A DNA stretch of 64,000 nt from Magallana gigas (lineage: Eukaryota). A model generated the notes under the pieces. That model made no database searches. It saw nothing but the letters and a program-made list of their open reading frames with translations, and was not told the DNA's origin. The stretch spans positions 28,458,001 through 28,522,000 of the forward strand of contig NC_088853.1 of the NCBI RefSeq assembly GCF_963853765.1, read 5' to 3'. Positions within the stretch are counted from its first letter, which is position 1. The number at the start of each line of letters is the position of its first letter. Positions 168 through 59,831 of this stretch are shown here, piece by piece. The position numbers and the translations under genes were made by a program.

Positions 168-371
168 CATCTCGTCGATGGATTCGCACATTATTTAAGC
201 TATATGGTTTCCCTAAGTCTACCTGAAGCCGAGTTTGTGTCTGGTTTGTATTAGTGCGCGAACAATTAGGTTCATTGAAATCTAAATTCCAATCATCAGC
301 TAATGCTGCTTCGTGGCCTTGATATGTTGAAATCTGTAATATATTTGTTGTTTTTCTTCTGGAAAGGTGTT
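168..371 (-). CDS. Gene A: single exon encoding the N-terminal half of an F-type lectin (fucolectin-like) domain; the rest of the gene lies beyond the window start
   Basis: Translation EHLSRRKTTNILQISTYQGHEAALADDWNLDFNEPNCSRTNTNQTQTRLQVDLGKPYSLNNVRIHRRD aligns with exon 2 of genes B-E (LQVDLGxxY motif). AG acceptor at 372-373, GT donor at 166-167; 204 bp, phase 1-1. Confidence 0.8.
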
Positions 372-1174
372 CTATACAAAACGAAAGAAAAATATTAACT
401 AGGAGTACAATAAAATACATTAAGGAGAATTGAACACTTATTAACATCTGCATATATTGTTTTGAAAGTGTTATCATGTGGGGTTTTTTTTCAGCCATTG
501 TTTTAAATGTTTTGTAATCTATATGTCCGGATATAAAGTTTGCACATATACACACCATTCACATAATTTATTTCAAGCTATATAGATAATATTTACTATT
601 GATCAAATTTCATAATGTCAAATATGATTACGTTATAATTTGACTATTTAAAACATTTGAAAACAGTGGGATTTTTCGCTAAATAAGTATAGTATACGGC
701 AAATACATTTCATTACACATTCTTATAAAGATAGCATACATTTATTTATAAAACAAATATAATTCGTTGCTCTTCCTTAACCAAAACACCAATTGTGAAA
801 CACTATATTTTCTTTAATATAATATTGCTTTATCAAAACATTACCAAACATTACCCACCCTCAGTCATCAAATGATTCTAATTTTTTTTTTTTTTTTGTT
901 ACAAATGATACAGTTGTTACTTTAACCTTTTAAAAACAATATATTTTGTTTCATATTTAAGCAGTACATACCTAAACAATAATAAATATTGGCAATACAC
1001 ATCAATATTGTGATGAAAAAAGAAAACATATTCAATCCCATGAAAATAATCGTACGTTTTTATATTCTGGTTTTTTTTTTAAGAAATGATATAATAACAG
1101 GAAACTTATTTTTTAAGAGCTAAGTGTCATCGGATGAAAAAATATAAACACATAAATAGAAATATCAGGAAAAT

Positions 1175-1345
1175 TAAAATGAAACGTACGTGTTCTAAAA
1201 GTACTTGAAAATCATTTGTTTTAATAGTCATGCAAAAGGATATCGAAAAAAAATTTATCTAAGTTTGGCCTAAGAATTTAGGAAGTTGGTGCTTTCAATT
1301 TGCGTTTAATTGAGGAAATTTGTCCTTTCCGATTAACAAATTAAT
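1175..1345. repeat. Diverged direct repeat, copy 1 of a ~175-bp block (copy 2 at ~2745-2922)
   Basis: Shared AAAATGAAAC-TACGTGTT...GTACTTGAAAAT...TTATCTAAGTTT...TAGGAAGTTGGTGCTT-CAATTTGCGTT-AATTGAGGAAAT...TCCGAT-A-CAAATTA; roughly 75% identity by eye. Confidence 0.65.
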
Positions 1346-2361
1346 TTACGCTATATAGTTAACCTGGAAATAGTGTCGTTACTTTTCTCCTCAATACAGT
1401 TTTGCAAACCTAGATAATAATAACAATGTTAACTTTAAACAATGAGTCTCATAAAAGAATATAACAAGAGTCTCTATATGACGAAAGGCACCAATTTTTT
1501 TGCAGATAGTAAAAAAAAAGTAGGGACAAATAATATTTGCAATGAAATCCCTAGAACGAATTTATCAAGCAAAGAAAGAAAATATTTTTAAAAATCTGCA
1601 CAGAAAATGAAAATTTAATAAATTAGCATGAATGATAACAAATTAAAAGTCTACGATAGATGGCCCGCTAAATATGTATTCTTTGAATACCCATAACGTC
1701 TGAGAAGTTAGGCCATTCAAATTCATGAGTTGTGCGGTACAATCATGAAGACATGCGTTGTTACCATGGAAGTATTCACTGATTAAAGTATTGATATTGA
1801 TTTAAATCCCGTGATTTAAATGACAAAACAAAATCTAAATTGCATCCCTCCATAGATCGCTCATAATGCAAATGCATTTTCAAGTGATAATTATGAACAT
1901 AGCAATAATGATATAAGAAATTTATATTGAAGGGTAAATTTAGATATTACTATAACTTTGATTATACATTTCTAGCAAACAATGGAGTCTACCTTCTGCT
2001 TTTTATCAAATCGTATTTTTTCGAGTGTACCGGACGCTGCCTTTTGACAAGTCTGAGTGAAACGTTTTTGTTCAATCCCTTTCAGATATATAGACTAAAA
2101 ACAAAACAAGATAAAATTTGAAAACACGTTTGGTTGTGAATTGAACAATGACATTTTTGCCAGAATTTGACCCCGAAAAATAATTTTAAAAAATGAGTTT
2201 AATCTAGCAATTAACAAATATTAAATGAAATTGATATCATTAACTGAAATTGAAAACCTGTTAATATAGTCGATATTGCTTGCATTAATAAACTACAGAA
2301 ACTATAGAGTTGTGTATTCATACATTGGTATTATTATGTGCCACTTTTGTTTTAATATCAA

Positions 2362-56525: not shown

Positions 56526-56783
56526 TCAGTAAGGTTTCATCATCATGAGGGTTTCCTGTATGTAAGTTCCTGAGGTTACGGACGGATATCATGGATAGCT
56601 CCATTCTGAGGAGGCCCACGGCCCATGAAGGTGAGCTATATGGCACCAGTTGAACCACCACCTCCACCATAGATGGCGCCGCAGTTACCGTAATTATTCT
56701 CATCGTTGTCTTGATCATACGTGGTGAAGAGCAGCCGGGAAGGTTATTTTCTCCTGTGCATTCTATACTTACCATACTGTCAC
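56526..56783 (-). pseudogene. Decayed terminal exon of a fibrinogen-related domain (FReD/ficolin-like) gene
   Basis: After the TTTTTATTCAG acceptor: GDSMVS...G(M)LFTTYDQDNDENNYGNCGAIYGGG(W)WFNWCHIAHLHGPWASSEWSYP*YPSVTSGTYIQETLMMMKPY*; requires two 1-nt frameshift corrections and one TGG->TGA. Confidence 0.8.
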
Positions 56784-58400
56784 CTGAATAAAAAATTCAA
56801 GAATTCCTTTATTTAATTTAAACACGACGGTATTTATAACGGAAATCAGAAACATTTTATACTGGTTGTATACCGTTAAGGTACAGCAATACATAAAAAT
56901 ACACGTTCAATAATTGATCAGGGACAAAACATTTCATGAAGATTGCTTTTTAAGGGATATCATTAAGAAAGAGAGTTAAGTGGAATGGATGGTCGTGGCC
57001 ATAAATCTCTAATTCTTTGTTTTCCTTGTACAGATATATATATGTAACGTTTTAACATAATGTTAATTTTGATTCAACTGCCCACATTTTAGAAATATGA
57101 CATCGTAAAGACAACCTTTTCCCGCCATTTTTGCTTTTTTAGCATAAAACAGCTTGTTTTTTAAGCAGTTTTTCTTTCAGAAAACATTGAGCCCATGCTT
57201 AAACAAACAAAATATTTTAATCAGAGATGTATCTAGCCAAGGCTAATAAGTGACAAAAAAATTTCCTTGTTCATGCATGCGCTCTATATTTCCCATTCAT
57301 AAAAAGGTAAGAAAAATGTCAATTTTTGTATGAATTTGATTTAATTATAGAAATAGCGTCATTTCTGAGTCATATACTGCAAGAGAGTGCAAATAAATAA
57401 AAAAAATAGGTGAACAATATTTTTTACATCAACTCTTCAGAAATATAATATAACATTTTGTTGTACCTGAAACACTTTAAAAGATGGCTAATTATTGGGG
57501 CCGAATTTAACTCTTATCGTATATAGTTCTTTGTATACTATGCTATAAAAGATTGAAATAAAGGGTTTAATGATATGGTATGAAATGCTATGCTATGGTA
57601 TGCTATGAGATTTGAGAAAACACGCCCTCCTTACAGTGTTCACAGACAAGTCCCGACTATTTGGAAGTGAAATGAGTTTACCACTAAACTGCAATGTACG
57701 CATATACATTTTGTTCAAATGTATATGCTTTCAAATAAAAACAAATAAAACCAAGTTTAAATCATGTTGTTTGTTATGCTATGGTATGATATTACGAATG
57801 AGAATCTATGAGAGTTTATGCTGGTGTATAAGATTCCAATGCTATGCTATAAGAATCCATTTCTATGCTATGAGATTCCATTACTATGCTATGAGATTCC
57901 AGTCCAATGGTATGAGATTCCATTACTATGCTATGAGATTCCAATGCTATACTGTGTTATGGGGTATGTTGTCAAAGATATGCTTATACTGACACTTACA
58001 TAAATTTTGTTTATTGAATGGCTTATTAACTAAAATAACCTTACAATCTATCAAAGGCGCGTGATTGCACAATTATTGCATGTAATATATAATTTAGATA
58101 TTATGCTGTGCTCTTTTACAGAAATTGCCGCAGACATTGCTGTTTGAAATACAAAAGCCTTGCCTTACGCCTCGGCTTTTTATAATCATTTCTTCACCTC
58201 CGTGATTTTTCTGCAACATTCACAGAAAGTCGAACTTTATTTTGAATAATACAATATTGTCCCATACAAGTATCCAGTAGTCTTCCTTAAGCATTAATAA
58301 CAAAATGTTTAATATTTTAGGAGATTCTGTGTGGAAGTAATGAAAACCAAATCAATCGTAAATCATTAAATTGTTGGTTCCCAGTCTCATTCAAACTTAC

Positions 58401-59831
58401 CACAAATTCCGTTGTTTACGTCACAAGTCTTACATTCTGAGCACGGTTTACAATCATCGCCATATTCCCCAGTTTCGCATCCTAATTCAGAAAATACAGC
58501 TTTAAACTGATGAATGATTTTTTTTTGAAATACCGATCAGTTTACCTTTTGTCTACATCCTTAGAGCAAAGTGTTACACACTTGTTGATACCATTGGTTG
58601 ATTCATTGAGTTTTTTTTTTTTTAATTTGTAGTTTACTACCATTGGCTATCTACCAGAATTCATGGACACTTTTGAAGGGTTTATTTGAAATGGAAAGTC
58701 ATATAAATAAAATTTGTATAATAAATTTTTATACATGTAAGATTGAAGTTGAATTTTTAAAAAAAATTAAAATTAAATGATAGTACGTAAACTTTGCAAA
58801 CATTATCTTATCAAATACAAGAAATGCCTACCATAAACTTCTATTTCACATACTTCTAACATGGCCCCCGCTACTTTTATATGTGGTTTCAGATCATTCT
58901 TAGGTCATTGATTATCAATTTTCAAATTTGTATTACCATAAACTTCTATTTCACAGATTTCTAGGATAGCCCCCGTAGTAGGATCATCTTCAGGAGCGTC
59001 ATAAGTGGTCTCCACAATGACGTATCTAACTGTGTGTTTACACGGGATGTCTATTATATGTGGAAGTACGTCAGGATGTGTTGTGTTGTCAGTGTAACAG
59101 CGGGTTCTATGTGCTGTTGTTTTCTGCGTTGCCGGAAGATCTGATACATCCAAATAAAACTGTCTGAACCTATATGGCTGCCACTCGTTATTTCCTAGTC
59201 CTGTAATGATATAGTTTGAAAGAGTAAAAAAAAAAACATTTTTGCTGAAATAATGTATTGAATTGGAAAATCATTTATTTTACAATGCAATCATCTTATG
59301 AAATTGTTAATCAGCTGGACACAGAGTGTAATTTTTTTTTAAAACGCAAGTTTTTTTTCCCCTAAAAAACATTATGTTACTGCTATTATTATTAAAGTAG
59401 TTTGGAATTGTGTAATCAGGGAAAAAAATAGGTATTAACTATATTGTTAAAATATTGGAGAGGGTGTGTTCTTACCGTCCTTCCTGTAATAAAGTGTTAC
59501 GTTACTTATGCTGTATGGTTTTCCAAGATCCACTTGGAGCCAAGCGACTGTTTGATTTACATCAGTATGTGCACAATAACGATATTTTGTCCGTAAATCG
59601 CCGTCTATTGCCAAAGTTTCCTGCTGATTATCATAGGTTGAACTCTGTAACACTGTCGTTGAATTTCTTCTACAGATATTCTCTGTAAGTTTACACAAGT
59701 GAAAATCATGTTGATTTAACCATTTTATCACAAAAACCTTTGACTCTCACTACTAATTTTTACATACCATAACAATGATAATACTCCAAGAGAAATAATG
59801 TTGATATTCCTACTGATACCTGTATCTTCAT
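58401..59831 (-). CDS. Gene E: truncated duplicate of gene B (signal + F-type lectin + first EGF unit); downstream B-type exons absent
   Basis: Exons 59831-59768 (MKIQVSVGISTLFLLEYYHCY), 59682-59476, 59200-58937, 58481-58401, all intact and in frame; no homologue of B exons 5-9 seen between 50118 and 58401. Confidence 0.85.

Follow-up and report, generated by a model that had tools for sequence, protein, structure and literature searches.

We analysed a 64,000-nucleotide stretch of the Magallana gigas genome (contig NC_088853.1, positions 28,458,001 to 28,522,000; hereafter the window), which probably holds a tandem cluster of an oyster-restricted, modular lectin-EGF receptor family that includes one nonsense allele and one young truncated copy. 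The cluster consists of five tandem paralogues, genes A to E, all on the minus strand. The genes start with a signal peptide and a single F-type-lectin domain encoded over two phase-1 exons, and MEGF10/Draper/SREC-like EGF repeats follow. Within about 52 kb of one strand, some genes end in a short tail with tyrosines, one ends in a tandem phosphatase, and one has no cytoplasmic output.

The five paralogues have a common exon pattern. In A to E, a short signal-peptide exon 1 ends in C(Y/F) and is followed by the donor G/GTAT. Lectin exon 1 (phase 1, AG/GT ends) measures 204 bp in A (371-168) but 207 bp in the other four genes, and lectin exon 2, of the same phase and ends, has 267 bp in D against 264 bp in B, C and E. 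The 81-bp EGF exon, likewise phase 1 between AG and GT, lies at 12156-12076 in B, 35903-35823 in C, 49210-49130 in D and 58481-58401 in E. Thus, the original prediction of five same-strand paralogues sharing lectin exons, with an 81-bp EGF exon in B to E, was borne out by matching sizes, phases and canonical splice sites. The window is AT-rich (G+C 31%) and contains two runs of N (33500-33747 and 55657-55801). Its genes were searched exon by exon or through database relatives.

Gene models of the cluster

B, and by homology C, encode complete type-I membrane receptors comprising the lectin, MEGF/Draper-like EGF repeats, a transmembrane segment and a tail of 80-87 residues. After the 81-bp exon, both genes carry a 390-bp multi-EGF exon, two further EGF exons, a transmembrane exon and a tail exon; the Pfam matches of their repeats to EGF models were weak. 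The exons of B are as follows.

13455 to 13518, minus strand: B exon 1, signal peptide MKIQVSVGISTLFLLEYCHCF (family pattern and RNA junction)
13163 to 13369, minus strand: B lectin exon 1, 207 bp (Pfam, splice sites, RNA)
12614 to 12877, minus strand: B lectin exon 2, 264 bp (splice sites, homology, RNA)
12076 to 12156, minus strand: B 81-bp EGF exon (splice sites, RNA junctions)
9800 to 10189, minus strand: B large exon, several EGF repeats of MEGF/laminin type (homology, RNA)
9236 to 9454, minus strand: B EGF exon 3 (homology, RNA)
8604 to 8741, minus strand: B EGF exon 4 (homology, RNA)
8380 to 8476, minus strand: B transmembrane exon YVVIGTLGLSLLLNMFFIL (sequence, RNA)
7888 to 8134, minus strand: B tail exon with stop codon and the motifs ETYYLNP and PHYAHI (sequence, RNA, selection)

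All eight introns of B were confirmed by RNA contigs of three independent studies and one raw poly-A read, with junctions at 8134/8380, about 8476/8604, 8741/9236, 9454/9800, 10189/12076, 12156/12614, 12877/13163 and about 13369/13455. Because RNA contigs span every junction, B is transcribed and spliced as modelled, tail included.

Three further features lie in or beside the exons of B. At 10685-11281 in the long intron (with a copy near 57017-57613), the depth of RNA contigs reached about 1700 with many loose ends; this element is evidently a transcribed multi-copy repeat outside gene B proper. Just below lectin exon 2, at 12492-12581, a remnant repeats the exon end in a C-like form (VAGAMLEVCEIE) and represents a small duplication or conversion scar; the RNA splices at the upstream donor 12614 and not at this remnant. 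Tandem 24-nt units translating as HSIALES occur at 11477-11629 in the long intron and in a copy at 57819-57956 in E.

The model of C follows that of B, with an assembly gap in one intron.

37559 to 37616, minus strand: C exon 1, signal peptide MKTSVVILALSFLEFYHCY (family pattern)
36543 to 36749, minus strand: C lectin exon 1 (splice sites, homology)
35993 to 36256, minus strand: C lectin exon 2 (splice sites, homology)
35823 to 35903, minus strand: C 81-bp EGF exon (splice sites, homology)
34983 to 35372, minus strand: C large EGF exon (splice sites, homology)
34293 to 34511, minus strand: C EGF exon 3 (splice sites, homology)
33748 to 33885, minus strand: C EGF exon 4 (homology with B; its last base adjoins the gap, which masks the donor)
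33500 to 33747, no strand: assembly gap within the intron of gene C that follows EGF exon 4 (N run)
33272 to 33368, minus strand: C transmembrane exon (homology, splice sites)
32868 to 33132, minus strand: C tail exon with stop codon, ETYYLNP and PHYAHI (sequence, selection)

EGF exon 4 of C ends CAGCAGG/N and its B counterpart ends CTCCAGG/GTACTG, so that by homology with B the coding part appears complete. The far side of the gap aligned weakly with the 129-bp intron of B. With the donor masked and the intron aligning weakly, the continuity of C from EGF exon 4 to the transmembrane exon stays a homology model. The UniProt entry K1R071 (Magallana gigas, 'Scavenger receptor class F member 2') is nearly identical to the gene C product. 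The C intron between the lectin exons holds a long (CT)n/(GA)n microsatellite at 36330-36460.

D is the receptor phosphatase of the cluster.

52614 to 52671, minus strand: D candidate exon 1, signal peptide MKVLVVILLLCFLELSQCY (fits family pattern)
49912 to 50118, minus strand: D lectin exon 1 (Pfam, splice sites)
49468 to 49734, minus strand: D lectin exon 2, 267 bp (splice sites, homology)
49130 to 49210, minus strand: D 81-bp EGF exon (splice sites)
48313 to 48419, minus strand: D second EGF-like exon (homology, splice sites)
47730 to 47830, minus strand: D transmembrane exon IFLIGGSIAVTIALIFIIVALI (sequence, splice sites)
43582 to 47358, minus strand: D juxtamembrane and D1 exons (Pfam, alignment with P0028; 5' end of the juxtamembrane exon approximate)
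45211 to 45213, minus strand: in-frame TAG in the D1 exon 45318-45190 (Lys at that place in C. virginica P0028)
39663 to 43255, minus strand: end of D1, linker, and D2 to the stop codon (guided by P0028; some D2 junctions provisional)

From the juxtamembrane region to D1, the exon ends are 47100, 46547-46460, 46299-46235, 46137-46101, 45964-45867, 45318-45190, 44832-44684 and 43714-43582. The phosphatase exons matched, in order, Pfam Y_phosphatase and the C. virginica receptor phosphatase P0028, which has the same lectin-EGF-transmembrane-D1-dead-D2 layout. Among solved structures, the best relatives of the D/P0028 phosphatase part were RPTP-sigma, LAR and RPTP-alpha/epsilon (about 1e-110). 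D1 carries KNRFKTTFPYDHSRV, WPDHG, VHC/SAGIGRTG (across a splice site) and the Q loop, so that the WPD loop and the HC(X5)R P-loop are intact. The P-loop of D2 reads VIS/RDGAALCG, with Cys changed to Ser and Arg to Leu. D thus appears to combine an active-type D1 with a catalytically dead D2. The same Cys-to-Ser change is found in P0028 and P0112, which argues that the dead D2 is ancestral to this phosphatase lineage.

The exon 45318-45190 reads ERHYAYYVIR, stop, LKIIHKK, followed by the donor gtaatg, where P0028 reads EKVYAYYVIRKMALRKKK. The TAG (45213-45211) lies upstream of both the WPD loop and the catalytic Cys. Since all other exons of D are open, this codon is recent, an allele, or an error. 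Accordingly, the prediction that D ends in tandem phosphatase domains stood as to the domains and their order, but in this haplotype D1 contains an in-frame TAG, and D2 lacks the catalytic Cys and Arg. D has two EGF modules versus about 9-10 in B and C, and the identity between its head and that of B is 51% in exon 1 and 62% in exon 2. The idea that tail and phosphatase forms are isoforms of one gene was rejected; isoform X5 of C. virginica LOC111116789 is merely truncated after D1.

E retains only the 5' part of the receptor.

59768 to 59831, minus strand: E exon 1, signal peptide MKIQVSVGISTLFLLEYYHCY (family pattern)
59476 to 59682, minus strand: E lectin exon 1 (splice sites, homology)
58937 to 59200, minus strand: E lectin exon 2 (splice sites, homology)
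58401 to 58481, minus strand: E 81-bp EGF exon, after which E has no further family exon (splice sites, homology)
57008 to 63979, no strand: segmental duplicate, about 92% identical, of 10676-17375 (window self-comparison)
55657 to 55801, no strand: intergenic assembly gap between D and E, which no family exon adjoins (N run)

The duplicated segment 10676-17375 comprises the upstream region of B, its exons 1-4 and part of its long intron. The homology of E to B ends at 57008, and E consequently lacks the later EGF, transmembrane and tail exons. No family exon was found between 50131 and 58393 apart from the candidate exon 1 of D, and the second gap lies between that exon and the truncation point of E. 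An ORF below E (56509-56796), fibrinogen-like, gave just a sub-threshold Spondin_N match in Pfam. If the 81-bp exon is left unspliced, the frame closes three codons further on. E therefore appears to be a young 5' duplicate of B, predicted to encode only a secreted lectin-EGF fragment, and the earlier description of E as truncated and potentially secreted agrees with a duplication breakpoint that excludes the transmembrane and tail exons. Spliced RNA contigs placed on B (12763-12878 and 13162-13370) show E-type letters at positions 12795, 12799, 12801, 13203, 13218, 13221 and 13295. E, or an E-like allele or paralogue, thus seems to be transcribed. These letters, together with a low ratio of nonsynonymous to synonymous substitution rates (dN/dS) between B and E, argue that E is not simply dead.

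The 81-bp exon is identical in B and E, and its flanks differ by 8%. EGF exon 3 of B and C (9236-9454 and 34293-34511) shows 92% nucleotide identity and a dS of 0.28, and their other exons are much less alike (dS 0.46-1.1). Both may be gene-conversion tracts.

The window start cuts A, of which the visible part is a signal-peptide exon and the first lectin exon.

972 to 1041, minus strand: A candidate signal-peptide exon MGLNMFSFFITILMCIANIYYCL with the donor G/GTATGT (donor context as in exon 1 of B, C and E)
168 to 371, minus strand: A lectin exon 1, 204 bp (Pfam, paralogue alignment)

Transposable elements were inserted inside and between the genes of the cluster. Together with the B-to-E duplication and the nonsense codon in D, these insertions bear out the proposed birth-and-death mode of evolution.

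Lectin heads, tails and the range of the family

Lectin exon 1 matched the Pfam families F5_F8_type_C and PF22633, and lectin exon 2 had no Pfam match. When a profile of 22 full heads from relatives was compared with PDB, the matches were FBP32 (2.3e-13), lectinolysin (5.6e-10), SpX-1 (3.4e-6) and eel agglutinin (1.8e-5). The C2 domain of factor V was weaker (0.002-0.01), and neuropilin was also well behind the F-type lectins. An AlphaFold model of the family head, built from residues 19-176 of P0028 and 22 homologues (database relatives rather than exons of the window), had a predicted local distance difference test score (pLDDT) of 92, and its Foldseek ranks 1-11 were all F-type lectins (E values 3e-10 to 3e-8). 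Thus, by profile and predicted fold, the head of the cluster is an F-type lectin, as originally proposed. The canonical fucose motif of these lectins is HX24RXDX4(R/K), and the calcium motif is h-h-D-G-x (PMC5712786). The calcium motif is kept in B (ALDGD), C (AVDGD), E (AIDGD) and D (ANDGN) and lost in A (ADDWN). Further, the His and two Arg residues of the head align with the fucose triad of lectinolysin.

The tail of B ends in KIRCKVCENTAEEDSTSLQMISRVSCNETYYLNPIELINEDPKEESCICEEEVDGCPEPHYAHIQKTSEKNTDEQTCEKEC, and that of C is 80% identical. As predicted, both end in short tails with the YYLNP and HYAHI motifs, read as ETYYLNP and PHYAHI; in each, YLNP is the only YxN and YAHI the only YxxI. 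The transmembrane segments of B, C and D contain no charged residue. The dN/dS of the tail exon between B and C was 0.18, and SCNETYYLNP and HYA(H/Y)IQKT were invariant in nine further protein clusters (77-93% identity). These alignments thus show real constraint on the tail motifs, but only over a shallow depth. Of 14 relatives examined, nine have the pattern Yxx[LI]-x8-Yxx[LI], eight with exactly 8 spacer residues and P0022 with 9. This pattern is the ITAM (the tyrosine-based activation motif of immunoreceptors) used by Draper and MEGF10 (PMC8092387). By eye, the YY…EL and P.HY..[IL] of B and C match the two ITAM halves of the relatives, with an insertion between them. The B/C tail has the look of a diverged ITAM tail such as most relatives carry.

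A profile search with lectin exon 2 found 92 clusters among 1.84 billion representative proteins, and every named member that was looked up proved to be an oyster protein (C. virginica, Saccostrea cucullata or Magallana). Judging by its named members, this small family is restricted to oysters. The database names of its members include draper-like, MEGF10/11, SREC2-like, RPTP T-like and scavenger receptor class F. Within the window, dS was 0.16-0.23 between B and E, about 0.3-0.8 between B and C, and about 1-1.4, which is saturated, between D and the others. The dN/dS was 0.10-0.32 in every B-C exon, 0.17-0.18 in the B-E lectin exons and 0.1-0.3 throughout. Thus, heads and tails are under purifying selection.

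In an 87-column tree of the heads, B, C and E were grouped (support 99/91) and D was placed apart with P0028 (support 95/89). Approximately unbiased (AU) tests did not reject D with B/C/E (p=0.14) or D with P0028 (p=0.42), and the best match of D lectin exon 1 was the gene C product (57%). Orthology of D to the C. virginica phosphatase type was dropped, because the AU tests and this match leave the placement of D ambiguous. The phosphatase-type heads of the family did not form one clade (AU p=0.019, for a grouping chosen after the tree was seen). Saccostrea P0060 and C. virginica P0028 are 74% identical in the juxtamembrane and early phosphatase region and 46% identical in the head. The head of P0060 is 57% identical to that of the tail-type P0056, and the head of P0028 is 67% identical to that of the tail-type P0034. 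Each of these two phosphatase-type heads is thus nearer to a tail-type head, so that heads have moved between output types. On the Saccostrea side, the contig examined for synteny carries a single gene. In this cluster, however, the head of D is distant from that of B, with saturated dS.

Elements between genes B and C

Other elements lie between B and C. At 18763-22383 on the minus strand are TRIM-like ORFs: a B-box ORF (21934-22383) is one stop codon away from a 414-aa ORF (20689-21930), after which an NHL-repeat ORF (18763-19743) comes next. Segments 18908-19355 and 20843-21278 are 68% alike. The TRIM-like ORFs may represent an allele with a nonsense codon or two decayed TRIM-NHL genes. Further, a 2-kb inverted repeat of 98% identity was found at 27441-29441 and 30294-32275. 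An HTH_psq (pogo-type) transposase fragment (29199-29390), the start of which falls in the left arm, reaches into the centre, and the whole (27441-32275) looks like a palindromic transposon.

Possible functions of the cluster

The family resembles several known systems in part. Like MEGF10/Draper/CED-1 and SREC/SCARF, B and C are single-pass type-I proteins that have numerous atypical EGF repeats of the laminin type and end in a short tyrosine tail, and most of their relatives share the ITAM of MEGF10/Draper, although B and C themselves have neither NPxY nor a canonical ITAM. In the oyster family, an F-type lectin replaces the N-terminal EMI domain of MEGF10/Draper/CED-1: no EMI match turned up when P0034, P0056 and P0102, which are full-length relatives, were scanned with Pfam (F5_F8_type_C-type heads only), and the exons of the window agree. 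The range also differs from that of MEGF10/Draper and SREC, the oyster family being found in oysters alone as far as the search shows. D and P0028 share D1 and D2 with the tandem receptor phosphatases (LAR/RPTP-sigma, RPTP-alpha/epsilon), including the KNRF, WPD, VHCSAGIGRTG and Q-loop elements of D1. However, the ectodomain of D is lectin and EGF rather than Ig/FN3, and in its D2, as in P0028 and P0112, Ser replaces the catalytic Cys and the Arg is absent; D has a nonsense codon besides. The heads are like eel agglutinin, striped-bass FBP32, lectinolysin and oyster bindin in profile, fold and calcium motif, and their triad residues align with those of lectinolysin. Unlike these F-type lectins, they have a changed fucose spacing and no Cys-Cys pair, and they sit on a membrane receptor rather than on a soluble protein.

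With the paired receptors of vertebrates (KIR, Ly49, Siglec, PIR), the cluster shares linked genes, one ectodomain family, varied outputs, decoy-like truncations and birth-and-death. In those systems the ectodomains are nearly identical, whereas D and B differ as described above in head identity and EGF number. Further, the oyster cluster has neither an immunoreceptor tyrosine-based inhibition motif (ITIM) nor a charged transmembrane residue for an adaptor, and the phosphatase of its 'inhibitory' arm would be built in by fusion and not recruited.

In our preferred reading, the lectin head would bind a fucose-type glycan, and clustering of B or C would cause Src-type kinases to phosphorylate the tyrosines of the tail. 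The phosphorylated tails might recruit SH2 proteins, for which YxN would fit Grb2/Drk and YxxI would fit Syk/Shark or SHP types; alternatively, they might recruit endocytic adaptors, with uptake or signalling as the outcome. Phosphatase-type paralogues would set the level of tyrosine phosphorylation in these same cells. Signalling by Draper/MEGF10, the nearest family, runs through Src, Syk/Shark and the phosphatase Corkscrew (PMC8092387).

The original prediction proposed a paired-receptor rheostat, in which the tail-type B and C and the phosphatase D sense the same glycan with opposite outputs and E is a decoy. Draper-I/Draper-II/Corkscrew is a precedent, since one engulfment receptor there has both activating and phosphatase-linked forms (PMC8092387). 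The proposal gains from this precedent, from genes that are linked on one strand and share one head family, and from the ITAMs of the relatives. It gains also from the swapping seen in other oysters, where one head subfamily occurs with both outputs, and from E, which is under purifying selection and whose letters occur in RNA contigs.

Several observations weigh against the glycan and tail mechanism of the preferred reading, against the rheostat, or against both. In B, C and E, the fucose motif is altered to H-x27-RKD, followed after 9-10 residues by the next basic residue; in D, it is H-x27-R-E-F, with REF in place of RxD; in A, Arg replaces the His (CSRT for CSHT) and DDW replaces DG. Glycan binding is thus predicted as likely for B, C and E, less surely for D, and doubtfully for A. 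Motif inspection of the B and C tails found no NPxY, canonical ITAM or ITIM, so recruitment of SH2 proteins is conjecture, and YAHI could equally be a YxxPhi sorting signal. The lack of ITAM and ITIM, the uncharged transmembrane segments, the diverged head, changed RxD and low EGF count of D, and its in-frame TAG weigh against the rheostat, and that stop codon may itself be an assembly or allele artefact. RNA-backed splicing is confined to B, the models of A, C, D and E being drawn from sequence. Receptor phosphatases can also activate Src kinases, as in CD45-type action, so that an 'opposite' output of D is not a given. D is best described as a paralogue that split long ago from B and C, and not as their matched partner. 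The rheostat is plausible at family level and partly supported, by one head family on both outputs, swapped among other oysters, and by the Draper precedent; as an account of this cluster, we consider it quite improbable.

Tandem duplication and exon shuffling could also have produced these genes with no function in common: B and C would be scavenger/endocytic receptors or act in gamete or self-recognition, and D would be an adhesion-type phosphatase used elsewhere. The old divergence of D, the NCBI names of the relatives (scavenger receptor class F or MEGF) and a YxxI near the C-terminus that fits a sorting signal agree with this, as does the role of F-type lectins in oyster fertilisation (PMC5712786); oyster sperm bindin is an F-type lectin also. 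However, the same heads recur on ITAM tails and phosphatases, which is easier to understand if the outputs share a signalling setting, and we regard the absence of a shared function as unlikely. It is highly unlikely that the cluster is largely decaying, with D and E as pseudogenes and B, perhaps C, working. The TAG in D1, the loss of the transmembrane and tail exons from E and the transposable elements in and between the genes are what decay would leave. Nevertheless, the other exons of D are open and its catalytic motifs are kept, so that the stop is recent or just an allele, and for E the B-E lectin exons have a dN/dS of about 0.17 and its letters appear in spliced RNA.

The preferred reading thus remains that of a tandem cluster of a modular, oyster-restricted receptor family. 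Taken alone, the window brings a modest gain, namely a well-supported annotation of five genes, of which one is a nonsense allele and one a young partial duplicate. A wider idea, which we hold only tentatively and with little confidence, is that oysters built their own modular immune-type receptors by shuffling heads among ITAM tails (activating), fused phosphatases (a built-in 'eraser') and secreted decoys, as a counterpart of paired receptors independent of the vertebrate Ig/C-type-lectin systems. A literature search, incomplete in coverage, found no description of an F-type lectin-EGF-phosphatase architecture. The cognate 'eraser' phosphatase of MEGF10 and CED-1 is unknown (PMC8092387), and a directly fused phosphatase would be a candidate answer. 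If the family works as the preferred reading proposes, bivalves would couple glycan recognition to phosphotyrosine signalling via receptors with interchangeable outputs, which would bear on diversity and regulation in innate systems without antibodies.

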